The notes under the pieces: generated by a model
Seen by the model: only the letters and a program-made list of their open reading frames with translations
Database searches by the model: none
Told to the model about the DNA's origin: nothing
Translations under genes and position numbers: made by a program
Part shown: one piece after another, positions 20,901 through 61,070 of the stretch
Numbering within the stretch: the first letter of the stretch is position 1
Layout: each line of letters starts with the position of its first letter
DNA from: Macrostomum hystrix
Lineage: Eukaryota > Animalia > Platyhelminthes
Length of the DNA stretch: 64,000 bases
Direction of reading: 5' to 3'
Assembly (NCBI GenBank): GCA_950097015.1
Contig: CATNEN010000029.1
Location: 4,774,001 to 4,838,000 of the forward strand

Positions 20901-21789
20901 TGATCTGCAATTGTTGCTCTCCTCCCACTGATCTGCAATTGTTGCTCTGCTCCCACTGATCTGCAATTGTTGCTCTGCTCCCACTGATCTGCAATTGTTG
21001 CTCTCCTCCCACTGATCTGCAATTGTTGCTCTGCTCCCAATGATCTGCAATTGTAGCTCTGCTCCCACTGATCTGCAATTGTTGCTCTCCTCCCACTGAT
21101 CTGCAATTGATCTGCAATCTCATACATCCATATGTTTGTTCATGTCTACATGTGGATGTATGCGAGTATAATATGCGCAGTTGAAGTGTCTGTATGCGTG
21201 CGTTAGTCTCTTGGATGTTTTCAGCGAATTGGTTCGTCGTATTATTTCAGAGTTAATTAAAATTGTGATGTTAATTAATATTTTTCAGGGTCGCGAACTA
21301 TCAGCCAAGACTCTGTGGGTGTGGACGGCTGTGTCTTTGTATCAGGGCGGCGTCATCATGTACGGCTCTCTGTGGCTGTTCGAAACTTCATTCCTGCGCA
21401 TTGTCAGCATAGCATTCACCGCCATTGTGCTCAACGAATTACTCATGGTTGCCTGCATTGTGCGCACCTGGCACTGGCTAATGTCCGTTGCGGAGTTGTT
21501 GAGTCTACTCTGCTACTTACTGGCTGTGGTTGTGCTGCCAAAATATTTCGGTTTGTCTTCGTTATCTTTGCTATCTTGTCTATATAGCTTTCTATCGAAT
21601 GAAAGAATAAAACAACTCTTCATATTTCCAGATCCCAGCTTCATTTTGACGCTAGGCTTTCTGTGGAAGGTGGCCGTTATTACAGCAATCAGCGCCATAC
21701 CAGTCTTTATTATCAAATTTGTGCGTTATTACATGCGACCGCCAATATCGCGCAAGCTGCAATCGTGGGTCAACTCATTTATTTTCTAA
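5964..21789 (+). CDS. ATP9: P4-ATPase (phospholipid flippase), ATP9/Neo1 class; 5' exon not located
   Basis: Exons with GT-AG borders and consistent phases: 5964-6543, 6747-7162, 7261-7426, 7500-7898, 12700-13145, 13511-13700, 14034-14244, 14331-14689, 21289-21550, 21632-21789. Motifs: [16 protein letters not shown] (P4 DGET), DKTGTLT, QASSPDE, WMLTGD, RCSPKQK, IGDGGND. Confidence 0.93.
8205..8584. repeat. 28-bp pyrimidine-rich minisatellite, continued at 12525-12595 beyond a transposon insertion
   Basis: Unit TTCTCTTGGTCATTATCCTTCTCTTCA(A/G); the same unit resumes at 12525. Confidence 0.9.
8585..12524 (-). mobile_element. CACTA/EnSpm-like DNA transposon (~3.94 kb), no transposase seen, in ATP9 intron 4
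   Basis: TIRs CACTGTAAACTCCAGGGG (8585) and CCCCTGGAGTTTACAGTG (ends 12524); 2-bp TT duplication of the minisatellite target; subterminal GGTCCGA/CGGACC repeats at 8600-8860 and 12460-12510. Confidence 0.85.
9966..11696 (-). CDS. Transposon accessory protein with N-terminal CIDE-N-like domain (~575 aa; true start probably in an upstream exon near 12076)
   Basis: Uninterrupted ORF inside the TIR element. N-term [30 protein letters not shown]...[15 protein letters not shown]...ELFFLEPGQ; C-term [16 protein letters not shown] resembles EnSpm second-ORF (SAMD3-like) proteins. Confidence 0.7.
   Translation of the reverse strand, partial: LRTSNHDRSSKKLILASSLQDLLVQGCSKLGIVAVEDVRILTSDGFDVDASEFLPALSKAGTELFFLEPGQEILDAAAPGEGAKSGGVATRDRAATPYEAAMSGGVATPNRATMSSEAATSGVAGSPINAYLRSWPTIYSLPKMPDLESALKKLERDPRLGTDFMLKANFVNKFLNYIINDVFNNFKSKQDPYLYGKELQNLCIAIASTYPGLRDGSADGTFLWRQKIRRRFKEIRYKIQSECDSPTVQTMRQKFGRKKRAADATKSSISDSFTEEKNDSDEENVGPTGRKRRRVAAFEDDEDDEEDDEEVVQAKRQKVNCEDAESTATSTSMITKSVIFGDVLQECVPESNDTDRIRLNENYLTMEIEDVLSNMKCLFSERVLRCQNKTVEEELQLYKPLSVPRVLLQEAFLMIELYKSRRKADYVLPRTPEDIEQNVCGALRHVWQKRDTMKRYMYCKLYVNDCDDDDTVLMNGLCLLLGRLRINPEKLFDAELPIHIIREDSSWRGISVNGAVLRCDSIKDTVVAIAICSVSFNLQHVPCLEAFLETLEVLSKLRRRDAVSRAPAQSLIAVLC
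13754..13970 (+). mobile_element. tRNA-derived SINE, family A
   Basis: Box A TGGCTAGAGCG, box B GATTCGATTCC, conserved core GCAAGACGCTTAACTCTGCATTGC...CACCCAGCTGTTAAATGGGTACC. Related copies at 28285-28510 and 31580-31785 (minus). Confidence 0.8.
14910..21115. repeat. 28-bp minisatellite array (~6.2 kb, ~220 copies) in ATP9 intron 8
   Basis: Unit ACTGATCTGCAATTGTTGCTCTCCTCCC with recurring single-base variants and no spacers. Confidence 0.98.
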
Positions 21790-21813
21790 AGTTCTTTTTT
21801 TAACAAGGTTATT

Positions 21814-22362
21814 AGTGCAACCAATCAGCTGTTTAATAGTACAACCAATCAGCTGTTTAATAGTACAACCAATCAGCTGTTTAATAGTACAACCAATCAG
21901 CTGTTTAATAATACAACCAATCAGCTGTTTAATAGTGCAACTAATCAGCTGTTTAATAGTACAACCAATCAGCTGTTTAATAGTACAACCAATCAGCTTT
22001 TTAATAGTACAACCAATCAGCTGTTTAATAGTACAACCAATCAGCTGTTTAATAGTACAACCAATCAGCTGTTTAATAGTACAACCAATCAGCTGTTTAA
22101 TAGTACAACCAATCAGCTGTTTAATAGTACAACCAATCAGCTGTTTAATAGTACAAACAGTCAGCTGTTTAATAGTACAAACAGTCAGCTGTTTAATAGT
22201 ACAACCAATCAGCTGTTTAATAGTACAACCAATCAGCTGTTTAATAGTACAAACAGTCAGCTGTTTAATAGTACAACCAATCAGCTGTTTAATAGTACAA
22301 CCAATCAGCTGTTTAATAGTACAACCAATCGTCTGTTTAATTGTACAACCAATCAGCTGTTA
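21814..22362. repeat. 24-bp tandem repeat (~23 copies) just after the ATP9 stop codon
   Basis: Unit TACAACCAATCAGCTGTTTAATAG; an isolated ~1.5-unit copy lies at ~23878-23912. Confidence 0.95.
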
Positions 22363-24215
22363 ACAGTAGAAAGACTGCTATTTTCACATAGGGGCTCCGA
22401 CACTCCCGCCTGGTTTGAGCAAGCCGGTCGAACCCGGCGACCTATTGAGGCGAGACCCCTTCTGTCTTCTATGGTGGACACTAGCGGGAGCGGCGGAGAC
22501 TTTGAACAGCCTGACTCTCCGGCTGGCGCTGGGACGCCATTGATGATGACACTGCTTCAGAGTCGGACCTGACCTGCTCTCTATTCCATGCTGACTTGTG
22601 ATAAATCCCTGCAACGCGTGTTACGTATTTACATTATGCTGACTTGACGATTCTCAACAGTTTTTTGTCTGTTGCGTTCTCAAAGCATTCTTAGTTTGCA
22701 TAGAGTAATTGTTCTCATTCCTGATAACCAATCAATGGGCTATTTAGTGAGCTGATCTCATAGCCAATTATCTTCAATTTCTAATATTACAAACAAGAGA
22801 AAATTATAATCATCTGCAACACAGACATGATTGGATCTTGCTACTGGGGTAGTATATTGCGAACATAGTGAGTATTTTTGCTTCTTGTTGCCTTTTTTAG
22901 TTTTGTTGTTAAATCTGCAAGCTACGAGTAATGAAGAATACTGAGCCTACTCAGCTGCTAGTACATATACTTATTCGAGTTTGTGTCACTCAGTGTATGC
23001 AGCACCTGCCAGTATTTATTATTTCAGCACTTGAATCGAGAATTTCTTATTACCTAGATGTTTTCTTCTTCAAGATTGGTTCGGTGTATGCTTTTCTTTT
23101 TAGTTGTTTTTCGACCGTCTTCCCCGCTAAAAATAGGGATGTTTCTTTGGGTGATTCCAGTTGTAATCTGCGGTGTTTCGAGAAAAGAAACAGCCGAACG
23201 CTGGAAACATACCAATCGGATGATTCCATGCTTAGAATCTACGCAACTGGGCGTTTTCTCGGTGCTTCTTGGTGGCGAAATGGAATCACCCAAAGAATCC
23301 TCCAGTTCGGAAGATTCCATGCTCAGAAACCGCCGAGGAATCGCCCGTAAATAATTCTCTGGTTGTCCCATGGGCCACTGGTTCGGGTGATTCTTCGTCG
23401 GTTTCCGCACAATTTACGGTTACATCGGCTGCTTCCTGGGTGGTTTCTTTAACTCTTGCGAGATAGGGGGGATTTTGGTAGATTCCACTCCTATTTTGCA
23501 CAAAAAAACCGCCGAAAAAGCAGCCGAATTTTTTACAGGGTCCCCCGCTCGGCGCGCACCCTTGGCACACATGACTGCCTCGTCATGCAGACGGCTTAAC
23601 TGAAAAATTCGTTTTTGGTTCCGCATACAGTTTTTGTGTTAATTGATTTGTGTTTTTTCAGTGCAGCCATACAAATTGTTTGTCTTATTTATTTAGAAAT
23701 GTTTTTATTAATATATATATAAGTATAATTTTCTTTTTTATAGACCAATAGACTCCTTAGAACTTCGTTATGATCAGCTGGTAGGCGGGTAAACATGGTA
23801 TTTTTAGGCATTCTATTTTTAGAAACACTTTTTGGAAACAACTTTTTTAGTAAAGAGCTACTATATTGCAATAAGTCGGCTGTTTAATAGTACAACCAAT
23901 CCGCTGTTTAATGTGAATGTAAAATGTTAAATGTAACTGATAAATACTTACGAAGCCATTAAACAACAAAATCTGTGTTTTTCCCAAAATGCGAAGAATC
24001 TGACTGTTAGCTTAGCAATAGTTGGCACTTATCTATATTGATAATTGGTATTCCCTCCAATCCCAAGGTCAAACCCAGCCGCTAGCCAATGAGAGTCAAT
24101 TTTAGGGGAATCCGAAAAGCTAGCGAAGTTTAAAAGTGGAGTGATCTGAATGTGTCGTTAATTTTTATCTAGTCAAGTTAGTCATAGTGAGTATTTTGAT
24201 TATGAATCATAATGT

Positions 24216-24915: not shown

Positions 24916-25585
24916 ATGATGACAAATGATTCAATTCAAACCTATTGGGCACCCTGGCAGTGCAGTGGACTTTGATTTGCAGTGACCGCTCATTTGATTA
25001 TGGTTCGCTTGTTTCAGTTGGTTACCGATTCAAATATATTTGACAGTGTTTGGGCAATGCGATCCCGGCTCAGAATGCTGTATAGGCACTAAGGAGAAAG
25101 TTGCCTTTGTGTCTTCTGGAAGCAAGTTTGCTGTGCGGCTTTGTCTTGCTTTCTCTGCTATTATGATTCAATAGTAGTTGATACTCCTTTACCTGCATCC
25201 GACCAGAAAGAGATAAGAGATGAGATATGGGAGTGATCAGACATTGGAGAGATAAGAACGTGGAAAAGGAGACAGGGAGATGCGACACGGGAAAATGAGA
25301 ACTTGGAGATATGGGACACGGAAGAGATAAGATGGGGCAGAGATGAGACAGGTAAGAGAAATGACGGGACATACGATACGGGAAAATAAGACACGGGAGA
25401 GATACGACAAGGCCCTTATTCAAGAGCTCTACTGGCCGTATCTGTTCCCCAACTAAATTCACTAATTCAAATCTCGCTTATTCTATTTGACAACAATTTC
25501 AGCGGACAGCGAGCAGCGGCAGCAAACGCTTGCACCGACAAGAGCGCACCGCACAGAACTCTGATAGAAGACACAACTGACAGTT

Positions 25586-26164
25586 ATGCAGGCCATCAAG
25601 TGTGTTGTGGTTGGCGACGGAGCCGTCGGCAAGACCTGCCTGCTCATCTCATACACTACCAACGCCTTTCCCGGCGAGTACATTCCCACAGTGTTTGACA
25701 ACTACTCCGCTAATGTCATGGTGGACGGCAAGCCCATCAACCTGGGCCTGTGGGACACGGCTGGCCAGGAGGACTACGACCGGCTCAGGCCGCTGAGCTA
25801 CCCGCAGACAGATGTGTTCCTCGTCTGCTTCTCCCTCATCAGCCCGGCCAGCTATGAGAATGTGCGCGCCAAGTGGTACCCGGAGGTGAGTCATCACTGC
25901 CCGAACACGCCGATCATCCTGGTGGGCACCAAGCTGGATCTGCGCGATGACAAGGACACGATCGAGAAGCTGCGCGAGAAGAAGCTGGCCCCCATCACCC
26001 ACCTGCAAGGCATGACGATGGCCAAGGAGATCAACGCAGTCAAGTACCTGGAGTGCTCGGCTCTGACGCAGAAGGGCCTGAAGAATGTGTTCGATGAGTC
26101 CATCAGAGCCGTGCTGTGCCCCAGGCCGCGTCCATCGAAGCGCAACAAGTGCGACCTCCTTTAA
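25586..26164 (+). CDS. RAC1: Rac1 small GTPase, canonical, intronless
   Basis: [51 protein letters not shown]; 192 aa. Confidence 0.97.
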
Positions 26165-38778: not shown

Positions 38779-39670
38779 CTTAAGACTGGACAGAATTTGA
38801 AATGGGATCTTAAGACTGGACAGAATTTGAAATGGGATCTTAAGACTGGACATAATTTGAAATGGGATCTTAAGAGTGGGCAGAATTTGAAATGGGATCT
38901 TAAGACTGGACAGAATTAGAAATGGGATCTTAAGACTGGACAGAATTTGAAATGGGATCTTAAGACTGGACAGAATTTGAAATGGGATCTTAAGAGTGGA
39001 CAGAATTTGAATTGGGATCTTAAGACTGCGCAGAATTTGAAATGGGATCTTAAGACTGGACAGAATTAGAAATGGGATCTTAAGACTGGACAGAATTAGA
39101 AATGGGATCTTAAGAGTGGACAGAATTTGAAATGGGATCTTAAGAGTGGACAGAATTTAAAATGGGATCTTAAGACTGGACATAATTTAAAATGGGATCT
39201 TAAGACTGGACAGAATTAGAAATGGGATCTTAAGACTGGACAGAATTAGAAATGGGATCTTAAGACTGGACATAGAATTTGAAATGGGATCTTAAGACTG
39301 GGCAGAATTTGAAATGGGAACTTAAGACTGGGCAGAATTTGAAATGGGATCTTAAGACTGGAAAGAATTTGAAATGGGATCTTAAGACTGGGCAGAATTT
39401 GAAATGGGATCTTAAGAGTGGATAGAATTTGAAATGGGATCTTAAGACTGGACATATAATTAGAAATGGGGTCTTAAGACTGGACATAGAATTTGAAATG
39501 GGATCTTAAGACTGGATAGAATTTGAAATGGGATCTTAAGACTGGACATATAATTAGAAATGGGGTCTTAAGACTGGACATATAATTTGAAATGGGGTCT
39601 TAAGACTGGACATAGAATTTGAAATGGGATCTTAAGACTGGACAGAATTAGAAATGGGATCTTTAGAGTG
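38779..39670. repeat. 30-32-bp tandem repeat (~29 copies)
   Basis: Unit CTTAAGACTGGACAGAATTTGAAATGGGAT, with 1-2-nt length variants in the right half. Confidence 0.95.
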
Positions 39671-39675
39671 GATTG

Positions 39676-39750
39676 AATTCTAGATGCCCCAAATGAATGT
39701 GGCCTCGCCGCGGAATCAAACTTCGGGACCTTGGATCCGGGTTCTTCCAC
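39676..39750 (-). mobile_element. SINE family B head fragment
   Basis: CCCCAAATGAATGTGGCCTCGCCGCGGAATCAAACTT matches 43177-43215. Confidence 0.7.
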
Positions 39751-40348: not shown

Positions 40349-43300
40349 ATGGAGTCAAGAAACATCATGTGCGTCATCGTAGGCGATAGTGAAGTGGGCA
40401 AGACCTGTCTAATCTCTTCTTATCTAAAAAATGGATTTCAAAGCCAGCACATCAGTACTGATTTTTTTGTTGCCCACCGATTCACTACGATTGTTGAAGA
40501 GACTACCTTTAAGTTAACACTATGGGACTCGCCAGGCGAGGAAGACTACTACAGGCACGTGCCAGCGAGCTACCCGCAGACTGACGTGCTGCTAATGTGC
40601 TTCTCAATTGACTCTAGAAGCAGCTTCGAGCACGTGCGGGACAAGTGGAATAAAGAGCTGCGTCGAAACTGCCCCAAAGCGCCAAAGATTCTAGTTGGAA
40701 CCAAACTGGACCTTCGGAGCGGTGGAGCTGCTGCCGGAAGTTTGATAAGCAAGCTGGAAGGATTGGAATTGTGCAAGAAAATGCGTGCAGACAGGTACAT
40801 TGAATGCTCAGCTCTGACTGAAAAGAATGTGAAGGAAGTCTTTGACGAGGCCATCTTCGCAACCGTTGGTGGACCATCAAGAGCGCCGGAGAAAAAGAGG
40901 TAAAAAGCACTTTTTCTCTGAATGAATGTTACAACAAAATTTTTATTTTGCCCACGCTTTTTCCATGCAGCAATTCGCCGCTTTCAAAGTTAAAGTCTAA
41001 AAAGTGGAAGAAGAACAAAGGGACTGATTGTTCAAGGTAACTTTTTCTATTCAAGTATTTGCCCCTGGCAGCATAGCACAATAAAAATATGTTATCCAGC
41101 ATTTTCACTTGACCCATTTCCAAATTTTAGTAATTTGTTCAGCAGCAGGGAAAATGTTGCCGATAGAAGTTACGTTGATCAGGGAATTGAGCCGTAAGTC
41201 TGTTTGGCTTAATTCTGTCTGAATTCTTTGTGAAGACTGCTATTCATTCCACTTTAGATGGTTGATGCTTGTCCCAACAGAGTCAGAATCTTCCAGTTCT
41301 TTATTTCTACAATTTTTGTTCTGTACTAGATCAATTTAGTGCAGAAAAGCCTTCCTGCAGAAAGACAGTCGACTCAGCCCTATTATTATAGACGCGAAAG
41401 AGCATATTTTACCTTGGTCTTGTATTGTTCACCCGCTAGCCCTAAATCGCACTAAAGACCCCGACTTCACTCAACAGTAGAAAGACCATGCTATTTCCTC
41501 CCCTGGGGAAAGATCACGGTGGGATTTCAAATGTTGAAAGCGCTCATTACCTATAGTTCCTTTTGTAAAAAACAATATTCTTTTTTGTAAAGGACCTTCT
41601 TTAAAAATTGATTTAATTCTCACATAAGGGAATATGACTGTGCCAATGAGCAACCACTTCGAGAGTCCACCGCTTTCATAAATAGATACGGCTACACGAA
41701 GCCAGATGTGAATCTGGTGCATGAACAGTGAGTATTCATTTAAATCGCAAAATTTTTCGTCCTAAGCAATGTATATTTCTTTTTTGTGTCAATTTATTCG
41801 CATACAGTGCCGATGAGGACGAATATTATGCGTATGATGAAATTAAAACGGTTTGGACGGTTCAGGCTACGGACAGTGAGCCGTTCCTGTCGCCATCGCC
41901 ACCGCAGCCTTTGACCCTACCTGCAGCACCTCAAGGTCCTGCACATTCTACATTACCCAGGTGAGTTTCGAGTTTGTATTCTAAAAAACCACTGATAAAG
42001 AAAAAAATCCTAAAATCCGGAAAATTACAAGTTAGGTTTTCACAGGATAAGTAAAAAACAATTCTCCGATTTAATCATTGAATTATTTTACGATTGTACA
42101 TTTAAATTTATCTTTTCGGTTTTGGTTTTAGTCCATTGCAAGACGTGAAAACGAACAATGAAGGAGCAGCTCGGCAGTACGAAAATTTGTGCTGGCTAAC
42201 TTCATCTAACGAAGTTGAGAGACCACCTCTACCTCAAAGGTATAATTTTGAGTGGAATCACAATGAAATAAAACGAAATATTTCGCGAAATTAACTTAAT
42301 TTTCATCATGCCTAGGGAGTCACTATCCTTTGACAGATCTAAAACAATCTTAGCTTCATTCTAGGCTTGCTACGGTCACGTCAGTTCTTGCTGCTTCGGA
42401 GGTAAAATGCGACAGAGCTGCAGCGGCATCATCTTCTGCAATGGCCCCAGTGTTGAATTATCAGACAACAGAGAATCCAGCTGATTCTGGAACCTATCAG
42501 CAGGAAATCATTGAAGCTCTACCACAATATGCAAGCAGGTAAATTAATTTTACCTGACAAACATTCTATCTACAATCTACTACATAGTGCTCGTAGTTTG
42601 TACAATGAGTATGGAAAAATTTTCAACCCAGCTCACTTTTATTCACTTACATTATTAGCGCTGACGTTTTTGAAACAGGCTTAATCTTTCATTTGAAACA
42701 AAATGTTGTTTTTAATAGCTCCCAACAAGGGTTCAAAAGTTAGGGCCAATCCAGTGCATGTCCCGATACGGGGGTATACGTACTGCGTACTGCACAGACA
42801 AGGATGTGTCAGACCCGTTCTTGAAAGCAATGGCGAGGCCGCGATCGTCGTAGACTTTGCCTCTCAGCAGCTCCTTTAATAATAATAATTCCTCGTAATT
42901 GCAGGAAGGCTGCGGCAAATTGGCACATCATTTGGTGACACTAGACCCGCAGCCAGCGAGGAGGCAATTCTGCCCATTTCGCTGACTCCTGAGCACACAC
43001 GCACACAGATACTTTACGCAGGCACACGCTCACACAGGTGTGTACATCTGCCCTGACTTTCTCATCGTCAGGCAGTGTCAAGAGTACACTTCAGTACACT
43101 TCACTGTGCCTTGGAGGTTGGCCCTCAAGGGCGTAAATTGCACGACAAGCCCCCAAGCCTTCTCTCCACGGCTGCGCCCCAAATAAATGTGGCCTCGCCG
43201 TGGAATCGAACTTAGAGACCGTGGTGCGAGAGGCAAACGCGATAACCGCTCTGCCATGCAGGTGGAGAATCGTACATAGTAGCTGTTGCGGCTCTGGGGG

Positions 43301-45858
43301 CATGGTTCCACTGCGTCGCGTTTTGACACTCTTCAGAGACGATCTGTAAAACTCCGAATTAAACAGCGTGTTTGCCTGAAAATAGTTCAACACCATTTAT
43401 GTACGAGCTATCTGTAGACTAAATCCGAGTTTGGTCGGCAGCAAGTTATAGACAACAAGCGTACATTCAAATAAACTGCAAATACTTTTTCATAAAAAAA
43501 ATTTTAGCCTGTCAGAAATTGACCACGAAAAAACAAAAGAGCAGGCAAAGAGGCTCGAGGCTGAGCAAGCAAAGCTGAAGCTTCTTGCCCTCGGTGATGA
43601 GGCGGTGGGCAAGACTTGTCTCCTCACTATGTACGCTGAAGGAAAATGTCCGTCAGAGTATGTGCCCACTGAGACGGACGACTGCTTGACGAAGGAAGCT
43701 CAAATCGATACAAGTACAATTACAATTGGCCTGTGGGACCTCAGTGGGTCAAAAGATTTTGACCATATGCGACCGGAGAACTACAAACTAACTGACGTGA
43801 TCCTCATGTGCTTCTCGATCGTCAGTCCCTCCACCTTTGAAAGTGTTCGCAACCGATGGCAACCGGAAGTGTCTCGCTATTGCCCCAACACTCCTGTTGT
43901 CCTGGTGGGCACCAAGGCTGACCTGCGCCATGACCAAAGCACGCAGGAGAAGTTGCGCGCCAAAAAGCTCACTCCAATATCCCACTTACAAGGAACAAAG
44001 CTAGCCAAAGACATCGGCGCCAAAATTTACGTTGAATGCTCCGCCTTCAGTAGGCAGCGACTCCAGACCGTCTTTGATGTGGCTCTGCAATTCGCTCTGG
44101 AAAGTCAGGAAAGTTCAAGGGAGCGAGCTTCAAATCCTGCCAATAGGTAAGCATTTTATGTAAAGTAAACAATAAGTTTTGAGCTAACGCTGAATTCACA
44201 AAGGCCTGTGACAGTCATAATGATAAAATGAAATTACAAGAGTAGGAGAGCAGTGACAGTAATATTGCAAGCTTGTCTGCGGATTGATTCAAATGAATGA
44301 TCTAGTTTTTCAGAATGTCCTTCAATCTTTCTGAATAGTCTTATTTTATATAAACGAATCCTCATAATCATACAAAAAGTAGAGTTACATAAAAGTTCGT
44401 CGAGTTCTATTATGAGTTCTATTATGTACTTAACTAGCCAACCTGATGCCTCTATCAACGATGACTACTACAACGACATTGATGATGACTGCGACAGTGC
44501 CAAAAACGTTGAAGACGTCGAAGATTATGACTACAAGGCTGTTGACTTTGGTGATTCTTTTGTCGAACAAAGTCATTCTAATGCTGCAAGCACAACTACG
44601 GGTACTTTAGAACGAAAGCCGGTGGTTCCTCCGCACCCGGTTCCAAAACCGCGCAGATTCTTCAGCCGAGAGACTACGGAAGACCAGCGAGGGATGAGCG
44701 ACGATTTGTCTTTGAGCATAGCACCACAGTCTGGTACAGCGCTTTTCGACGAGTTAGCAGACAACCGAGACTCGTAAGTTTGTAATCTGAAGGAAATTAA
44801 AACTGGCACTATTTGATTGTGATCCCTACATTTTTTATTGCGTATGGCTTTCCATTTCGATGCATTTACTAAGGCTTAACAAACCTTAACTAACTTCAGA
44901 CATGGTCGTGAGCAAGAAATAGCAGAATCGAATCTGACAAAAGCCTGGTCCTCCATGAAGCAGTTGTCAACAATCTTTCTGAATCGGTATGTTAATGCAT
45001 TTTTCTTTTATTTATGCAATTCGGCAGCACAACTCAATACTATTTCATTCTTCGCTGATCTAACTTAATAAATTCTATTTTTCACCCAGCTCGTGCTTCG
45101 CTAAAGAAATTTACCGAGTGACTTCACCTCAGGGATTCTGCCTAATCATTAATATAAAAAACTACATAGACTCTGTGAAGTTTGAGGAGCGACTGGGCTC
45201 GGAAATCGATGTGAAACGCGTGAAGGACACATTTAGCAAACTCAATTTCATAGTTCGAGTTCATGAAGATGTCAGCTGCAATTCATTGGCTACAGTCTTG
45301 AGTCTTGCTTCCATCTCTCCTGAGCTGTCAGATCACGGCTGTTTCGTCTGCTTCATCATGGCTCACGGTGCGAACTCGTTGATCTACGGAAGCGACGGCG
45401 TAGCCCTGGAGATTCAATCGATTACTGAACGGTTCCGAGGAAACCAGTGCGAAGGATTGCGCAACAAGCCGAAGCTCTTCTTCATTCAGGCGTGCCGCGG
45501 AATGGAAAACATTGACGAAGAAAGAGGTGTAACAATCGATCAGCAAGTCGCCGAAGAACTGGGTGCGCACTGCCCCAAGGACAGCGACTTTCTGCTGAGC
45601 TTTGCGACCCCGAGCGGTCAGGTTTCCCTGCGCAGAGAGAGCGAGGGATCGCCGTTCGTGCAAACTGTGTGCGATGTGATTGAGGAGCGATACAAGAGTG
45701 AGCACGTCATCGACATGCTGACCACTGCCAACGGACGCCTCAAAATGAACCCAATCTATAAAGGAGGCCTACAGATGTACGTGGTGTCTGAGACCCAGAC
45801 GAGACTATCTAAAAAGTGCTACTTGGATCCGGGCTTGGCATCGATGTTTCAAGAATGA
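40349..45858 (+). CDS. Predicted Rho-Rho-caspase fusion protein (~938 aa)
   Basis: Exons 40349-40899, 41808-41960, 42132-42239, 42365-42538, 43508-44146, 44438-44773, 44900-44986, 45090-45858. All introns GT-AG and phase 2; total 2817 nt open. Rho1: GDSEVGKT/DSPGE. Rho2: GDEAVGKT/DLSGS. Caspase: MAHG, QACRG, SLR. Confidence 0.85.
42872..43262 (-). mobile_element. tRNA-derived SINE family B, near full length (~390 bp)
   Basis: Box A TGGCAGAGCGG, box B AGTTCGATTCC, body, then (TAT)n tail at ~42875. Confidence 0.8.
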
Positions 45859-49899: not shown

Positions 49900-50060
49900 G
49901 ATGGAAACCTTTCTGGAATTTTTAAACTACATTTTAAACTTTTTACCGAGAACTGAACTCACAAGAATGGGGAACCAGAATGGGGAATGGGGAATGAAGA
50001 TCCGAATACTCACTCAATGCAGTAACTAAAAATATACTTGTTTTTAAGAACTCGTTAATA

Positions 50061-52400
50061 TTCAAGGCTGTGGGTCTGGATTCAAGGCTGTGGGTCTGGA
50101 TTCAAGGCTGTGGGTCTGGATTCAAGACTGTGGGTCTGGATTCAAGAGTGTGGGTCTGGATTCAAGGCTGTGGGTCTGGATTCAAGGCTGTGGGTCTGGA
50201 TTCAAGGCTGTGGGTCTGGATTCAAGACTGTGGGTCTGGATTCAAGACTGTGGGTCTGGATTCAAGACTGTGGGTCTGGATTCAAGACTGTGGGTCTGGA
50301 TTCAAGGCTGTGGGTCTGGATTCAAGACTGTGGGTCTGGATTCAAGGCTGTGGGTCTGGATTCAAGGCTGTGGGTCTGGATTCAAGGCTGTGGGTCTGGA
50401 TTCAAGGCTGTGGGTCTGGATTCAAGACTGTGGGTCTGGATTCAAGGTTGTGGGTCTGGATTCAAGGCTGTGGGTCTGGATTCAAGACTGTGGGTCTGGA
50501 TTCATGACTATGGGTCTGGATTCAAGGCTGTGGGTCTGGATTCAAGACTGTGGGTCTGGATTCAAGACTGTGGGTCTGGATTCAAGACTGTGGGTCTTGA
50601 TTCAAGACTGTGGGTCTGGATTCAAGGCTGTGGGTCTGGATTCAAGGCTGTGGGTCTGGATTCAAGGCTGTGGGTCTGGATTCAAGGCTGTGGGTCTGGA
50701 TTCAAGATTGTGGGTCTGGATTCATGACTATGGGTCTGGATTCAAGACTGTGGGTCTGGATTCAAGACTGTGGGTCTGGATTCATGACTGTGGGTCTGGA
50801 TTCATGACTGTGGGTCTGGATTCAAGACTGTGGGTCTGGATTCAAGACTGTGGGTCTTGATTCAAGGCTGTGGGTCTGGATTCAAGGCTGTGGGTCTGGA
50901 TTCAAGGCTGTGGGTCTGGATTCAAGGCTGTGGGTCTGGATTCAAGACTGTGGGTCTGGATTCAAGACTGTGGGTCTGGATTCAAGACTGTGGGTCTGGA
51001 TTCAAGACTGTGGGTCTGGATTCAAGACTGTGGTTCTGGATTCAAGACTGTGGGTCTGGATTCAAGACTGTGGGTCTGGATTCATGACTGTGGGTCTGGA
51101 TTCAAGACTGTGGGTCTGGATTCAAGACTGTGGGTCTTGATTCAAGACCGTGGGTCTAGATTCAAGGCTGTGGGTCTGGATTCAAGACTGTGGGTCTGGA
51201 TTCAAGGCTGTGGGTCTGGATTCAAGACTGTGGGTCTGGATTCAAGGCTGTGGGTCTGGATTCAAGACTGTGGGTCTGGATTCAAGGCTGTGGGTCTGGA
51301 TTCAAGACTGTGGGTCTGGATTCAAGGCTGTGGGTCTTGATTCAAGGCTGTGGGTCTGGATTCAAGGCTGTGGGTCTGGATTCAAGACTGTGGGTCTGGA
51401 TTCATGACTGTGGGTCTGGATTCAAGACTGTGGGTCTGGATTCAAGACTGTGGGTCTGGATTCAAGACTGTGGGTCTGGATTCAAGACTGTGGTTCTGGA
51501 TTCAAGACTGTGGGTCTGGATTCAAGGCTGTGGGTCTGGATTCAAGACTGTGGGTCTGGATTCAAGGCTGTGGGTCTGGATTCAAGACTGTGGGTCTGGA
51601 TTCAAGGCTGTGGGTCTGGATTCAAGACTGTGGGTCTGGATTCAAGGCTGTGGGTCTTGATTCAAGGCTGTGGGTCTGGATTCAAGGCTGTGGGTCTGGA
51701 TTCAAGGCTGTGGGTCTGGATTCAAGACTGTGGGTCTGGATTCAAGACTGTGGGTCTGGATTCAAGACTGTGGGTCTGGATTCAAGACTGTGGGTCTGGA
51801 TTCAAGACTGTGGTTCTGGATTCAAGACTGTGGGTTTGGATTCAAGACTGTGGGTCTGGATTCAAGACTGTGGGTCTGGATTCAAGACTGTGGGTCTTGA
51901 TTCAGGACTGTGGGTCTGGATTCAAGACTGTGGGTCTGGATTCAAGACTGTGGGTCTTGATTCAAGACCGTGGGTCTGGATTCAAGGCTGTGGGTCTGGA
52001 TTCAAGGCTGTGGGTCTGGATTCAAGACTGTGGGTCTGGATTCAAGACTATGGGTCTGGATTCAAGGCTGTGGGTCTGGATTCAAGACTGTGGGTCTGGA
52101 TTCAAGGCTGTGGGTCTGGATTCAAGACTGTGGGTTTGGATTCAAGACTGTGGGTCTGGATATAAGACTGTGGGTCTGGATTTAAGACTGTGGGTCTGGA
52201 TTCAAGACTGTGGGTCTGGATTCAAGACTGTGGGTCTGGATTCAAGACTGTGGGTCTGGATTCAAGACTGTGGGTCTGGATTCAAGACTGTGGGTCTTGA
52301 TTCAAGACCGTGGGTCTGGATTCAAGGCTGTGGGTCTGGATTCAAGACTGTGGGTCTGGATTCAAGGCTGTGGGTCTGGATTCAAGACTATGGGTCTTGA
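50061..52400. repeat. 20-bp tandem repeat (~117 copies)
   Basis: Unit TTCAAG(A/G)CTGTGGGTCTGGA. Confidence 0.98.
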
Positions 52401-53044
52401 TTGATAAGATTGATTGTGTGGGTGTATTGTTGACTTGATAAGAACACTTGATCTGCGCGGCAGTGTTGATGCATGGAAAAACGTAGATTGTATATATATT
52501 TGAAGTAAACGTACTTACAAATTAAAGTCTTTACCGGTATTACGTTAAATGTTAAATTGAGAAAAATACAATACTTTTTTTTGTTATGTTATTTGTTGGA
52601 GTAGTTAAAACATATAGCAAATTGCAAGACTGTAAACCTGCTTTCTAATGACACGGGAAATCTGAAATAAAAACTTTCTTAACTTTCACTTACCTTTTTT
52701 CTGCTGTAAGTTTGCCAAATTGACGTCTTTTTATGCTTGAATTTGTTTCTTTTGTTGTTGAAAGTTGTTTCTTTTAATACTCGGGGGAGGAGAGGTTGGT
52801 TTTGTTGAGTACAGAGGCCAATTTGTCACAATTTACCAGTGCGTTTTCTGTGTACACCGTCAAGAATAGAGACTGGGAAGTGCATATTGTGTGCCAGTTA
52901 TGAGCGAATATAGTCCATTGACCGGAAACATTTTATTTCGCATTTCAAATTGGACACATCCGCAATTGTGTCAGGTTTTCTTGGCACATCAAAGCGTGGA
53001 CTGTGAGGTCTAAGACTTAATATCAGACCTCTGATATTATATAA

Positions 53045-53640: not shown

Positions 53641-56600
53641 TCATTGAGGCATTGGGTCCGGCTTTGTGGAGGCTAGATTTGGATTCAGGAAGCACTTCTT
53701 CGAGAGTCTCGTCAATGTCTCCGGCACAACGTACAGCTTGTTCTCTCCATCGTCGATCGGGTTCTCCTTGAGGCGCCTCTTCACAGTGGTCAGCATGTCG
53801 ATGATGTGCTCAGTCTGATGCTGCTCCTCAATCACTTCGCACACGGTTTGCACGAATGGCGATCCACCATTTGCGGTGCGCAGTGAAACGTGGCCATCTG
53901 GACTTGGAAAGCTCAGCAAAAAGTCGCTGTCATTAGGACAGTGCATGTTCAGTACGCTTGATGCTTGATCAGCATAGACAATCTGCCTGCCTGTTCTCTC
54001 ACAAGGAATGCGGCCACGACAAGCTTGGATAAAGAACAGTTTGGGCGTGTGGTGTAATCTGTAGCAAAGTCCTCCCTCAAACGGTGCAGTGATCGACTTA
54101 ATGTCAAGCGGTTTTCCGTCGCTTAGTATGATTGACGAGCTTGTGCCGTGAGCCATGAGGAAACAGACAAAACAACCGTGATTTGACAGTTCAGGTAAGA
54201 TCGCCGTCTGGCTTAGAAGGTCGACTAATTGATTGTAAGTCAGATCCTCGTGTACTTTAACCAAGAAGTTCAGTCTCCTAAACAGCTCCTTCACACGCTT
54301 GACATCAAATTCCGAGCCTTTTCGCTCCTCGAAAAGCTCGTTCTTGTACTTATTGATGTTAATGATCAAGCAGAAGCCCTGTGGCGAAGTCACTTGGTAA
54401 TAATCCACAGGTGGTCGTCTAAAATTCAAGAGCAAATTGCACGATGCGACAATCAAAGCTGGATGAATGCAAAAAGACGTATGAATGCAAAAGAAAAGTA
54501 GCTTTTGAAAAAAACTTAATCAATAGAAACTTAAAAGCGGGTGATTTTCACACGAAATGAAATGATTGAGCTACTTGCTATAGGATCTGCTGTTTCTAGG
54601 ATTTGAATCCGAATTCCTCATAAAATTAAGAATGATAAATCATCTAGCTATTGTTGCTGGGGGCGCCTCCACCATGGAAAACGGAAGCTCTTACGTTGAA
54701 ATGTTCATGCGCGGCTTTGGTATCGGATTCAGCAATCGATTTCGTGGACAGCGTGGCAAAGGAGTCACAGAATTTTCAGTAATTGCTTCTGTTATTGGTA
54801 GCTCAGCTGGACATTCCACTGATTTTAGCAGGTCATCATTTAAGTGCGGCTTTTCTGTTCTGGACGCAGATCCTTCAGGGATGACATCGTTGCCCGAACT
54901 CGCATCGTTTTCATCGTGTCTTCAAATTACAATATTGCAAAAAGCAATTAACTAATAATAAATTTTTAAGTTCTTTATCGTAAAATACATTGATATGGCA
55001 CTCATGATCATCGGAATTAATCAATATTTATATAATCGAAGTTTAAATGCTAAGTTTATCATATGCAACTAGGCTGTTTCAAAGTGCCTTCTGTGGTTTA
55101 GGCCTAGGGCACGTTCGTGTTTGGACTCGCACTAGCTGCCAATTTAACTAACCTTAGGACTAAGAAAATGGCCTCAGTTTTAGGAAACATGCGCAATTAT
55201 TCAAATAGCTCATAAGCTCAATGCACTCTGATCACGAAAACGCGATGTCTATTGCACCAAGCAGAGAGGCCAGACTTGCACTGAATTTTATTAATCAGTC
55301 AAAGTTTGTTTAAGCCAGACTCATGCTCGTGCGTAGCAACCGCACAAGCTTCAACATAAGCGAAAACTCGGTGTGTCACCCCTAAAATTAGGCACCGCTG
55401 CGACGGCTAACTGCCCTGCATTAATAATCGCCAGTCGGAAGATAAAATCGAAGATATCGTTTTTAACTGGGACATTTTTGCAAAGAAAAAGCCATATCAC
55501 ATTTTCGTTAAAGGTACAAGAAATCTAAGTGCAATTAAAAGAAAAGACAAAAATCGCTTACTTAAGTCGATCAGCGCCCTCGGCAATGCCTGCAGCTCCG
55601 GCAACAGCTTGTGATCTGCAATTTCAAGTTAAAGCGAGAAGCTATATAGTAATCGCATACACATTCACTCAGCCATTAGAAAGTAGAAGTGGTACGCTAA
55701 AAAATGTGCGCTAACACGCTGCGCTAGTCGACCTGATGGCGAGGTTCGACCTGGTGTCGGCAACACGCGCTTCCGCAAACCGCCAATTCGGCTGGTGACC
55801 TTTGCTGAGTGCAAGCGTAGGAGGCGGAAAGCGCGCGGCCGTTTCGCCACTACCCGCTTGGCGCAGCTAGACCACATGCTAATAATGCCTTACCGCGAAT
55901 GCAGCCGGCTAATCAACTGCGACACAGTGGAACCGCAGTTCATTTGATCTGATCAACGCCTGCTCTACTGTGACCTGCGGCTCTCCGACCCGCTCTACAG
56001 GCCGCCGATGCACCCCCCAACGTACGCTGTCTCGGTGGCCTTGTGGTCTGCACAGGCGGCGGACTACAATTCAATAGGAAAGGCTATAACAACTACCGCA
56101 GCCAAGACTCTGCCACTGATGGAGCCCGCGTCACGGCAGCTACCAGTTTGGGCGAACAACCCTGAGGTCTATGAGGCTCGGCGCACAGTTAAAGGACTAC
56201 GACGCTCCAGGCGCCCGACTTCCGACGCCAAGAAGGCACTGGCGGACATCTAGGAAAAGCGGCAGCAAGCTGCTGTGGACGACGCCATCCGGGTCGCAAA
56301 ACCGAGTCGTCTAGCCGGCCGTGAATGCCCTTACTGGTCGTAAGAAGAAGGCGGCGCTAAACCTGGCTGGTGACTCTGCGGTGGAGCGCAGAAATATGCT
56401 GCGCAGTTTCTTCGTCACCATCGTCAATGCGCCGTCGCCGTCACTGCCTGCTGACCTATCGCTGCCCCCTGAGGTATCACTGTCGAAGCAGGAGGATTTC
56501 GACATCCGTCCTTTCACCAGCACTGACGTTGTGGAGTTCGCTCGCAGAATTCCGGGAGGTCGCGCCCCCGGCCCTGACGAAGTGCCCATCGAGGCGTTGC

Positions 56601-59600
56601 GAGTCCCGAGGGTCGTCACTTGTAATAACTTGAGACTGAAGGCTGGCCAGGAATTGATTCACAAACGTAGCGAGCCAGTTGGAAGTTGCGGCTCCTTATA
56701 ATATCACTTCGTTCAATTTGACTGGCCCTAGGACTTAGGGCACGGCCGGACCAGCCACCTCAATTAGCACGAAAGCCAAGCGTGACACAAGTAAACTGCA
56801 GTCAGCTTGCACTAAGAACTGATAGACGCAAAGAAATGAAGCAAAGCAATAAACATAAAGTGCAGAGTGAACGCATTTAAGAGTCCATTGAATAACATCA
56901 CATCTCCCCTCTGAGTCAGTTTTCCCCATCACAGCTGCAGTCTCTCAGATGGGCCACGAGCTCTCAGAGGGTACCGCCGGGAAGTCGCGGCATCCTGACG
57001 CGCGTTGTTCTCTGGTCCGTCGGCGAGTTCGGGTGCCGCCTCCCTGACGGTGGCGCCGCTGGCGGTAGTAGCAGGATCCTGCTCTGACGCGCGCCGCGAG
57101 CTCTCGGGGTCGTGTCACCGCCGCCATCAGTCAGCGGCCGGCCGGCATCAGCGAGGTCGAGGGCGAAGCCGTCAGCGCGGGCCGCCACCAGCTGATCCGC
57201 ATGCCGCATGTGCTGACCGCGCTGCGAGTCGACGATGCAGTTGCGGCTGCCAGCGCCCGTGATGACGCCCTCCGCCCAGCGCGGCGTGTCGCCGGCCCTA
57301 GCGCCGGCGCTGATTTCGCGGAAAAGCACACGATCGCCGGTTTGGAACTCACGCGAACTCCCTGATGAGGTCACCGATGTTCTCGTCATCGAGATGGACC
57401 TGCGCCATGATGCTGGGCCAGTCCAGCCGCAGCTTAGCTAACCAGTCCCGTCCGAGCAGCGCCGATTCGCCCCTGCGTGACGACAAGCAGCGGGAGCTAC
57501 AGCTGCAGCCTGTTGTGCTTGACGGTGACCTCCGCCTGAACAGTACGAACAGAATGGGTTCCGGCCCACCGTAGCACTGTGACGCAAATCCTGGGCCTCC
57601 GCCGCATCATCGAAGAAGCGCGCATCCACCAGTTAATCCTGGTTGCTCTTTTCGTGGACTTTCGCCGGGCTTTCGACTCGGTGGTACGTGACGCGCTGCC
57701 CCTGGTGCAATGGGCCTACAATGTGCCGTAGGAGCTCATTACCGCCATCATGGCGCTGTACGTGGGCACCATCGCTTCGGTAGTGACGTCAGACGGCCTG
57801 TCGGACTGTTCAGCACGACCTCGGGAGTGCTGCAGGGGGACACGCTGGCGCCTTTGTACTCTGGGTGCTCTGTACCGGCCTGCCATCTGCAGACCACGGC
57901 TTCCTGCTGTGTCGGCGCGCGAGCCGGTGACACCCCGAGAAGAGGCCCTGCGCTCTCGGCTACGCAGACGACATCGCGCTGATGTCTTCGACAGTCGAAG
58001 GCGCCCAACGGCTGCTGGATGACCTGAAAAAGGCGGCGGCGGGAGTCCGTCTCATCGTGAACGTGCAGAAGACCGAGGGGCTGACGGTGCCGCGAAATCT
58101 TCCGGACGAGATTCTGCTCCGGGACGATAGCGGCCACGGGACCCCGGGACTTCCGGGGTGCCGCCAGTTCGTTTATCTCGACGGACTAGGGCCGGACGTG
58201 AGCGACGATTTGGCGAGACAGCGACAGCCTGGGCTGCCTTTCGATCAGTGCGCACGGTGCTGCTTTCGGCTGCGCTGACGGACAGCGCCAGGTCGCAGCT
58301 TTTCCAGGCGGTCGTTAAGACCGTGACGCGCTGCCCCTGGTGCAATATAATGCTCTATAATGCGCAGACCTGGACTCCGACGGAGGCGCTCAAGGGGCAG
58401 CTCAACACGACACATGCGGCCCTGCTTCGCGCTACGTTTGGCGCCCGCCGCGGCCCAGGAAGCGAGACGACCGACTCACTGTACAAGCGAGCGCGACTGA
58501 CGCGGCCTTCTGACTTGCTGAGACAGCGGCGCATGCGCCTTGCTGGGCACGTGATCAGGGCTGAAGCCTACTGCCCTGAGCCGCTGCTGGATGTGCTTCT
58601 GTGGACTCCGCAGGGACCGCGCAGGCGCGGACAGGGACGATCGGCCCAATACATCGACCTGCTCTTCTCAGACGCGCGCGCCCCGAGCCAGGCTGACGGA
58701 GTGAAGCATGTCAGCGATGTAAACTATGCATTAAGCGCGCGTTTTGACGCTGGCCCCCTTTTTTGGGCCACTGCGGCGGGTTGCGCTCTATTATTATTAT
58801 TTAGCAAATAAAAATCCATCGCACATTTTTCGTAAAAAGGTACAAGAAATCAAGGCGCAATTAAAGGCAAAGACAAAAAATAGTTTACTGAATTCGATCA
58901 TCGCCAATGCCTGCAGCTCCGGCAACAGCTTTTGATCTGCAATTGCAAGTTAAAGCGGGAAGCTATAGTAATCGCCTATCGCAATACATATTCACTCTGC
59001 CATTCGAAAGTAGAAGAGCAAAAATATTTCTCACGATTCAGGGAAATCGTTGGCAGATTTCTTTTTCGAAAAAATCTTAAACAAAGAGGCTAAATCATGG
59101 TGTGTTCTGAAAATGACGAAATGAAAGACTAAGGTAGTGCAATTTAATACCAATAATGAAAATTGAAGATATCGTTTCTAACTAGCATTGCGTGTTAAAC
59201 TATATGTGCTAGCATGCATTTTGCTCTTAGCAAGTTAAATGTCAATTATAACACTTACAATTTCTGTTTAAGGCTACGTTCCTTTAAATTTGACTGAACC
59301 AATTTTTTAGTTGCACGAACCGCCTCATCGAAAACCTCCGTTACACCCTCTCTTGTTCGGGCAGAGCTTTCGAGATATTTAACTGCCTTGATCTTCTTGG
59401 CCATTTCTAAGCCTTGCTTGCATGTGATCGGAACCTGGTTCCGCTGCTTAAGGTTGTCGATCGTTTCCTGGTCATCGCGAAGGTCCAGGTGGGTGCCGAT
59501 CAGCAAGATGGGCGTGTTCGGACAATGGTACTTCACTTCCGGGTACCAGCTGGTGCGCACTCTCTCATAAGTTGTAGGGCGGATTAGGCAGAAGCAGATG

Positions 59601-59836
59601 ATGAACACATCCGTCCCCGGATAGATCTGCGGCCTGAACCAATCGTAGTCGTCCTGACCAGCCGTGACAAAAACGCTCAAGTTGATCTGCTTGTTGTCAA
59701 CCATGATTTTTGCAGAGTAGTCGTTAAGTACCGTTGGAATGTACTTGGTCCAGAAAGTCTTTGTTGTGTATGATTCGAGTAGGGCGGTCTTGCCAGCACA
59801 ACCATCTCCGACAACGACGCACTTGATGTCGTCCAT
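53641..59836 (-). CDS. Predicted Rho(Rac-like)-caspase fusion protein (~526 aa)
   Basis: Exons 59836-59259 (donor TT|GTAAGT), 54919-54695 (225 nt, open, donor AC|GTAAGA), 54418-53641; all phase 2. Rho: [22 protein letters not shown]. Caspase: MAHG, QACRG, SLR. Confidence 0.75.
55690..58803 (+). mobile_element. 5'-truncated, decayed RTE-like non-LTR retrotransposon in intron 1 of the Rho-caspase gene
   Basis: APE tail NTRFRK..QLDHML..SDQ; [13 protein letters not shown]; RT motifs [33 protein letters not shown]; RLAGHVIR; (TAT)n tail at ~58790. Multiple stops and frameshifts. Confidence 0.88.
56621..57572 (-). mobile_element. Nested Ty3/Gypsy fragment: protease end, integrase tail, PPT and 3' LTR
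   Basis: Minus strand: [15 protein letters not shown]; [27 protein letters not shown]; PPT AGAGGGGAGA followed by a TG...CA-bounded ~280-bp LTR (56902-56621). Confidence 0.78.
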
Positions 59837-60414
59837 TGCCCTATTGTAGAGAAGTCTAGTTAGCAGCAGCTTGCAAAATACTTTTTAGCAGTAAGCAAAG
59901 GTGCTGCACAATAAATTCAGTACAAGTCTTTGCTTTTCTAAATAAATATATTCGCGTGACAGACTAAAAGAAAAAATAGTCATTACCCTCGAATCGACAA
60001 TGCTTTCTGTACACCTGCCCGAGGCAGAGGCTCAGTGGAGAGAGTGCAATTAGCAGCAGCTTAGCATTAAAAAAAAGCTAAATACTTTTCGTTTTTCAAA
60101 GTTTTAGTAATTAAAATTTGTAAAAAAAATTTAAAGGACGGAATGCGCTCGCACCGGCGGGACACAATGCCTGTGTGGTATGAGTCAGACCAGGCCTACG
60201 GGCTAAGGTCTGCGATGCCTCACACCTGCAGTCGTTTTTTGAGCAGGCCTGGCAGGAAGGAGCCCTGTACCTCCGGGTGCAGGGATCCCTCCACGCTGTC
60301 CCGTCAGCTGACCCATGGGTACACGTCCCGCGAGTGTTCAAGGCTGACCCTAGGGCAGCCGGACAGAATGGGCAACAGCGCTGGATGACCCATCCAGGGC
60401 CTCTGGCCAAACTG

Positions 60415-61070
60415 GGTACCTCTAGCCCTGGCTGGAGGGAAAGGTGTCACCCTTTGACCTTAACAGGGTATGCGGCGAGTCCGCAGCTTTCGTGCACCTG
60501 TGCGTGATCAGGTACCTCTGGCTACGGCTCTGAGGGAGAGGTGTTACCCTTTGACCTTGACAGGGTATGCGGCCAGTCCGCAGCGTCTCGCGCACCTGTG
60601 CGTGATCAGGTACCTCTGGCTACGGCTCTGAGGGAGAGGTGTTTACCCTTTGACCTTGACAGGGTATGCGGCCAGTCCGCAGCGTCTCGCGCACCTGTGC
60701 GTGATCAGGTACCTCTGGCTACGGCTCTGAGGGAAAGGTGTCACCCTTTGACCTTAACAGGGTATGCGGCCAGTCCGCAGTTTTCGTGCACCTGTGCGTG
60801 ATCAGGTACCTCTGGCTACGGCTCTGAGGGAAAGGTGTCACCCTTTGACCTTAACAGGGTATGCGGCCAGTCCGCAGCGTCTCGCGCACCTGTGCGTGAT
60901 CAGGTACCTCTGGCTACGGCTCTGAGGGAAGGGTGTCACCCTTTGACCTTAACAGGGTATGCGGCCAGTCCGCAGCGCTCGTGCACCTGTGCGTGATCAG
61001 GTACCTCTGGCTACGGCTCTGAGGGACAGGTGTCACCCTTCGACCTCAACAGGGTACGCAGCCAGTCTGC
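60415..61070 (+). repeat. ~97-99-bp tandem monomers (~6.5 copies) in the LINE 5' UTR
   Basis: GGTACC anchors at 60415, 60511, 60609, 60708, 60805, 60903 and 61000. Confidence 0.92.

Follow-up and report, generated by a model that had tools for sequence, protein, structure and literature searches.

The activation of initiator caspases proceeds through their prodomains, and knowledge of that step rests almost wholly on the CARD and DED death folds. Rho-type GTPase domains are known from other composite proteins, since RhoBTB and Miro are atypical Rho proteins fused to other domains. A survey of lophotrochozoan caspases published in 2024 described ankyrin (ANK)-caspases in flatworms, a kinase-caspase in Macrostomum lignano and a ROC-caspase in the annelid Owenia fusiformis, and no other unexpected pro-domain was detected in platyhelminths (PMC11463336). 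Here we analyze a gene on the minus strand (59836-53641) of a 64,000-nt stretch of the flatworm Macrostomum hystrix (contig CATNEN010000029.1 of assembly GCA_950097015.1, positions 4,774,001 to 4,838,000), referred to below as the window, within which all gene coordinates are counted. Very probably this locus, here called the Rac-caspase gene, is a single transcribed and spliced gene of six exons, whose one frame encodes a Rac-derived GTPase domain that lacks a prenylation box, followed by a linker and a caspase-8-like protease. A caspase with a Rho-family switch as its prodomain, backed by transcripts, suggests that flatworms have another way into cell death or proteolytic signalling, which might be coupled to the binding of Rho partners or to an attack on Rho proteins.

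Transcript evidence and exon structure

The fusion of a Rac-like exon with a caspase had been proposed in an earlier note made from the DNA letters alone. The contig search with positions 53641-54919 led to four runs of one study (X1 to X4), each with about 40 Mb of contigs and with 71% of words found, which is roughly the exonic share. The Logan contigs of these runs were aligned to 54000-59990; the kind of library is not on record, and the clean absence of introns leads us to treat them as transcriptomes. In three of the four runs, spliced contigs join the six exons 59836-59259, 59106-59035, 58936-58889, 55615-55562, 54919-54695 and 54418-53644, so that one transcript connects the Rac-like exon to the caspase and the fusion is upheld. 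The five joints (59259/59106, 59035/58936, 58889/55615, 55562/54919 and 54695/54418) read CT..AC on the plus strand and hence GT..AG on the minus strand, and they delimit introns of 152, 98, 3273, 642 and 276 nt, all of which are in phase 2. All five are carried by the longest contig, which comes from X3, measures 1784 nt and extends from 59707 to past the caspase stop, as well as by a 1714-nt contig in X1 and by two contigs in X4, while X2 shows the last two. The exon interiors are all open, the split codons at the five junctions encode L, S, Q, K and T, and the joined frame comprises 584 codons.

The first exon (59836-59259) starts with the ATG at 59836 and encodes the Rac-like GTPase domain in 192 codons plus 2 nt; contigs cover it from 59707 to 59259, and it is spliced at 59259 in X1, X3 and X4. 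As the earlier note had described, the unspliced open reading frame (59836-59255, 193 codons) ends in KQKL without a CAAX box, and its stop codon (TAA, 59257-59255) is part of the donor TT/GTAAGT that the contigs use. Three mini-exons follow, each with phase 2 at both ends: exon 2 (59106-59035, 72 nt) contributes a split codon (L) and 23 residues, among them the short basic stretch KIFSKKKS, exon 3 (58936-58889, 48 nt) a split codon (S) and 15 residues, and exon 4 (55615-55562, 54 nt), a duplicate of exon 3, a split codon (Q) and 17 residues. Together with exon 5 (54919-54695), these four phase-2 exons build a linker of about 134 residues. Exon 5, predicted beforehand as an open phase-2 exon of 225 nt, is indeed open and is spliced at both ends in all four runs; it encodes an acidic, proline-rich stretch with the motifs DEND and PIPKPR (54726-54709). 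At position 54861 all four runs have C for T, which changes an AGA (Arg) codon of this exon to GGA (Gly) on the minus strand and is a departure from the reference that is fixed in the worms sampled. Exon 6 (54418-53641) holds the complete caspase catalytic domain in 258 codons, followed by the stop TGA (53643-53641). The joint between 54695 and 54418 was found in every run, as anticipated, and the phase-1 acceptor at 54459, through which the caspase could have been attached to an unrelated first exon, was used in none of them.

The route between the first exon and the linker turned out differently from the prediction. A direct splice from 59259 to 54919 was not seen in the four runs, nor was a single first intron of about 4.3 kb, since the three mini-exons lie in between and the repeat-rich DNA falls into intron 3 instead. 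A minor isoform that skips the mini-exons might nevertheless exist, because their uniform 2-2 phase makes such skipping compatible with the frame. Intron 3 (55616-58888, 3273 nt) is skipped in the contigs; it is GC-rich (0.56-0.65) and packed with decayed retroelement fragments. Two blocks of about 215 bp that are 82% identical to each other (59016-58800 and 55689-55476) hold exons 3 and 4 and flank about 3.1 kb of this GC-rich DNA, which means that an exon was duplicated around a transposon and that both copies are spliced in. Beyond this pair, no homologues of the mini-exons were found elsewhere in the cluster. Within the intron, 57400-58750 belongs to a dispersed repeat that matches at least 46 places in the genome at 73-92% identity, and a YADDIAL reverse-transcriptase motif (YADD) lies on its plus strand. 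The proposal of an intron inflated by an RTE or Gypsy element thus holds for the inflation by retroelement debris but not for the class, as Pfam returned nothing on the intronic reading-frame fragments. A gene of this structure would probably be split by gene predictors.

A retrocopy was considered as a source of the joined contigs and rejected for the reference genome, because in the 220-Mb genome the linker exon occurs only once and no second copy of the caspase exon exceeds 69% identity.

The Rac-like and caspase domains

The product of exon 1 aligns without gaps to residues 2-178 of human Rac1 (E 1.7e-72), including the Rho insert (124-135), and only Ras, Roc and Arf families were matched by Pfam, with Ras (PF00071) at 9e-42. 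In Rac1 numbering, G10, G12, G15, K16, T17, T35, G60, Q61, D118 and S158-A159 are kept, and the changes include F37L, D38N, W56F, D57V, K116H and C157S. The P-loop (GDGCAGKT) conforms to the G1 pattern GxxxxGK[ST] and switch I (YIPTV) retains Thr35. The G3 pattern DxxG with Asp57 is replaced by VTAGQ in both the reference and the expressed allele, and the G4 pattern [NT]KxD with Lys116 by THLD. V57 and H116 are present in both alleles, and the loss of both D57 and K116 occurs only here among 17 Rho domains from the cluster and from M. lignano. Asp57 helps to hold Mg2+ and Lys116 contacts the guanine, and substitutions at these positions impair nucleotide binding or speed exchange. The normal GTP/GDP cycle is therefore probably lost, and the domain may act as a fixed binding module. 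The CAAX prenylation box is absent and the domain becomes internal once the transcript is spliced, so that the protein is not lipid-anchored through a Rho tail.

The intact caspase that had been noted behind the acceptor at 54418 matches Peptidase_C14 (PF00656) at 2.6e-42 over profile positions 2-214 of 233, which covers p20 and p10. Its best match among solved structures is caspase-8 (1.5e-30), and structures of caspase-8 and caspase-3 match at 1e-30. The catalytic dyad is kept, with MAHG and QACRG aligning to SHG and QACQG of caspase-8, and so are the Arg, Gln and Arg of the Asp-specific S1 pocket (eeRkG, iQACRG and vslR, in comparison with caspase-8). The Asp of VYAD/Q aligns with the processing site LEMD384 of caspase-8. 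No CARD or DED death-fold prodomain was detected by Pfam, which found Ras, Roc and Arf in exon 1 and nothing in exon 5, the mini-exons being too short to scan.

The protein would be an initiator-type caspase with a Rho-fold module where a CARD or DED would otherwise stand. A partner that gathers several of these modules might bring the caspase domains together, so that they dimerise and cleave themselves. Such self-cleavage would likely take place at VYAD/Q, and the Asp motifs of the linker (DEND/A, IGDD and EGAD) may serve for the removal of the prodomain.

Family, origin of the Rac exon and genomic surroundings

An exhaustive, profile-free search with the caspase exon gave as its top match a 757-aa protein of M. 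lignano (PAA63380.1, 61% identity), which is annotated as 'hypothetical protein' and contains Ras and Peptidase_C14. In PAA49772.1 (1015 aa), from the same protein cluster, the caspase is accompanied by two Ras domains, and a 1207-aa UniProt model from the same species has four Rho domains followed by a caspase fragment. These models are orthologous to the plus-strand genes of the window (36199, 37812, 40361, 43575 and the caspase at 45106), which stand in the same order, and not to the minus-strand Rac-caspase gene. The public models of M. lignano thus disagree on the gene borders; in two nearly identical loci of that genome (NIVC01001849.1 and NIVC01003792.1) a double-Rho gene is followed by a Rho-Rho-caspase gene. 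In the caspase tree, the Rac-caspase is sister to the group formed by the Rho-Rho-caspase gene of the window (40349-45858, plus strand) and the Rho-caspases of M. lignano (support 98/97 and 99/96), and the ankyrin-caspases of M. lignano are the next group, nearest outside this clade.

The earlier note had suggested that the two Rho-caspase genes of the window form a maintained family rather than an accident, and three results agree with it: the single supported caspase clade (98/97), purifying selection between the two caspase domains (nonsynonymous divergence, dN, 0.30; synonymous divergence, dS, 1.45; dN/dS about 0.2) and the common linker motif. A six-frame translation of the window contains P[IV]PKPR at exactly two places, namely in the linker exon of each gene, and the M. 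lignano orthologue has it once too. The sister gene and the M. lignano models share with the Rac-caspase the arrangement of CAAX-less Rho domain or domains, P[IV]PKPR linker and same-clade caspase in one reading frame, and their Rho exons likewise end in phase-2 donors that overlap a stop. They differ from it in that the Rac-caspase has a single Rac-like Rho domain, which is 62-69% identical to canonical Racs and 37-41% identical to their Rho domains, in its own three mini-exons and in the nucleotide pocket, where the Rac-caspase keeps G12 and Q61 and has D57V and K116H, whereas the sister-type domains have G12E or G12S and Q61S or Q61E. These comparisons support a Rho-caspase family of Macrostomum type, of which the Rac-caspase is a second, structurally different member.

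That this gene carries a different Rho domain is correct insofar as the domain is Rac-like and distinct from those of the sister gene, but the difference is most readily accounted for by sequence that was recently derived from Rac (dS 0.5) and not by old divergence alone. In the Rho tree the domain falls among the canonical CAAX-bearing Racs of the cluster and outside the well-supported clade with the caspase-proximal domain of the sister gene. An approximately unbiased (AU) test, whose groups were defined with the tree already in view, rejected sisterhood to that caspase-proximal domain (p 5e-89, and p 0.001 with the copy at 49390 added) but did not reject sisterhood to the whole divergent Rho clade (p 0.10). 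Between the Rho exon and a Rac CAAX gene about 12 kb beyond the window, dS is 0.50 and dN 0.20, with DNA identity of 81-91% over the first 375 nt and of 69% and 59% at the 3' end. Compared with a dS of 1.45 between the two caspase domains and of about 2 (saturated) between orthologues of M. hystrix and M. lignano, this value indicates that the Rho exon in its present form is far more recent than the caspase. One possibility is that a Rac copy came to be placed before a linker-caspase unit that already existed; the other is that gene conversion from the neighbouring canonical Racs wrote over an older Rho exon. That the linkers have P[IV]PKPR in common, and that the CAAX-less Rho exons all end in phase-2 donors, favours, without proving it, an old fusion with later replacement, which would make this a fusion gene with one domain replaced or overwritten through gene conversion.

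The surroundings are an unusual local expansion of Rac genes. At least seven intronless canonical Rac-like genes, with the CAAX boxes CDLL, CTLL, CVLL, CSIL, CELL, CDVL and CQLL, lie within about 75 kb and are interleaved with CAAX-less Rho exons. Four of them are in the window (25568-26164, plus strand; 29252-28620, 30901-30227 and 32978-32340, minus strand) and three beyond it, in contig positions 4838001-4848000 (local coordinates 8345-7683 and 4579-3968, minus strand, and 9085-9843, plus strand). Just upstream of the gene at 32978-32340, on the same strand, a third caspase copy (34826-34026) is 39-46% identical to the one studied here; it has an intron within QACRG, an in-frame TAG (CDAI*KRYK) and a stop after an A-run, which make it a probable pseudogene. 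At the matching end of the M. lignano cluster a remnant of a caspase is present (locus-local 1959-2514). On another M. hystrix contig (C4:57206-60732) there is a CAAX-less Rac-like exon (local 2045-1446, minus strand) that is 60% identical to exon 1 and has Q61A and K116M. Its stop overlaps a phase-2 GTGAGT donor, and two more Rho-like domains follow (local 414-58, minus strand, and 9817-9356, minus strand, in a separate stretch); no caspase was found within 10 kb on either side of it. The window further contains two large, strand-skewed minisatellites at 14912-21109 and 50060-52402 (a 28-bp unit repeated 221 times and a 20-bp unit repeated 117 times) and smaller arrays at 8161-8585, 21809-22368, 38779-39679 and 60435-61067.

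Alternative readings and comparison with known systems

Several observations weigh against one conserved, functional Rac-caspase gene. The first 129 coding nt (59836-59708, codons 1-43) are contained in no contig and the true 5' end is unproven, and Logan contigs from a single study of unrecorded library kind give no read counts, strand, expression level or minor and rare isoforms. An orthologue of the Rac-caspase was not found in M. lignano, either among long and short proteins or in the 10-kb flanks of the two syntenic loci. Moreover, 23 of 449 nt of the Rho exon deviate from the reference in the contigs, compared with 2 of 818 nt in the other exons. The 22 differences listed lie between 59300 and 59651, where 16 codons are changed in their amino acid and 2 silently; between the alleles dN (0.058) exceeds dS (0.027), so that purifying selection on the Rho domain is not visible at that scale, an excess that is not significant on 22 sites. 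The expressed allele shows the canonical-Rac state at 11-14 of 21 alignable sites, for example in a 10-residue stretch of switch II. A single Rac paralogue as donor of this tract was tried and discarded, as none matches more than 14 of the 21 sites. Our reading is that the contigs show a second haplotype, altered by gene conversion or by rapid change; conceivably the contig exon belongs to an unassembled duplicate, which would itself still be a Rho-caspase fusion.

The same divergence is what might be expected if the Rac-like exon and the caspase were two separate genes and the fused contigs had arisen by read-through, chimeric assembly or from an unassembled paralogue, since it is the Rho exon that deviates by 5% while the other exons are nearly identical to the reference, all contigs stop at 59707, and contigs cannot show the absence of an unspliced, stand-alone Rho mRNA. 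We regard this as very improbable: the same five junctions recur in three separately assembled runs, intron 1 is covered by no contig and no branch appears at 59259 in the four runs, and a paralogue as source of the deviating exon was dismissed because the reference has no copy of the Rho exon closer than 82%. The exon also lacks a CAAX box, and its stop exists only as part of a splice donor. Accepting one spliced Rac-caspase gene, its Rho domain could still be an inert, decaying passenger, so that the gene would function simply as a caspase behind a long prodomain or, though transcribed, would be turning into a pseudogene. D57V together with K116H, unique among the 17 domains compared, would fit such a decay, as would a dN/dS of 0.40 to the nearest Rac relative against about 0.1 among canonical Racs, the allelic dN above dS, the duplicated exon with its retroelement-filled intron and the neighbouring caspase copy that is already a pseudogene. 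We nevertheless consider it unlikely, because both alleles keep the whole 584-codon frame open over the six exons, the domain retains the P-loop, T35, Q61 and the Rho insert and aligns gaplessly to Rac1, a dN/dS of 0.4 is still below 1 and the sister gene keeps its Rho domains across species.

A more specific role for the Rho domain would be that of an integrated decoy, on which Rho-modifying or Rho-binding toxins and effectors of pathogens act, whereupon the attached caspase fires. By analogy with the sensing of RhoA inactivation by pyrin and with the integrated decoys of plant nucleotide-binding leucine-rich repeat (NLR) proteins, the gene might then be a guard within a single chain, whose Rac look-alike is kept similar to Rac by recurrent gene conversion, is diversified between alleles and acts as a lure for pathogen factors directed against Rho GTPases. 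The cluster is dense and fast-changing, with 11 Rho-like open reading frames and three caspase copies in 64 kb and more beyond, and sequence has passed repeatedly between the Rho exon and true Rac genes. The 16 changed codons cluster in switch II, helix alpha3 and the insert region, the surfaces through which Rac meets partners and toxins. T35 and Q61 are switch residues that are commonly targeted by Rho-modifying toxins, and both are kept here, while D57 and K116, which bind the nucleotide, are lost. All of this is circumstantial, and the amino-acid changes, whose excess falls short of significance, could also reflect gene conversion or relaxed constraint; we therefore hold this role to be possible but rather improbable. 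If true, it would represent an innate-immune trigger of cell death in flatworms of a design not described in animals.

With the Rac-caspase gene taken as a spliced fusion, its counterparts can be compared directly. Like RhoBTB and Miro, it places an N-terminal Rho fold without CAAX and with a deviant nucleotide pocket in a multidomain protein, the difference being that the partner domain here is a protease. GTPase-deficient atypical Rho proteins typically carry substitutions of G12 or Q61, instead of which the Rac-caspase has D57V and K116H. Human caspase-8, its best solved match, shares the catalytic His and Cys, the Arg, Gln and Arg of the S1 pocket and the Asp at the position of LEMD384, but identity is about 30%, and death effector domains stand where the Rac-like GTPase prodomain is found here. 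A search of the literature for fusions of Rho, Ras or other GTPases with caspases returned nothing relevant, so that the Rho-caspase architecture appears to be present in public, unnamed models and yet undescribed; the M. lignano models flagged here are not listed in the published lophotrochozoan survey (PMC11463336). The caspases of that survey have in common with the Rac-caspase a caspase-8-related catalytic domain behind a long domain that is neither CARD nor DED, and in the protein of Owenia this domain also belongs to the Ras superfamily. That ROC domain represents the ROCO branch, however, and not the Rho family. What is new with the Rac-caspase is a second member of the Rho-caspase family that has transcript support, a recent Rac-type domain and a different pattern of changes in the nucleotide pocket.

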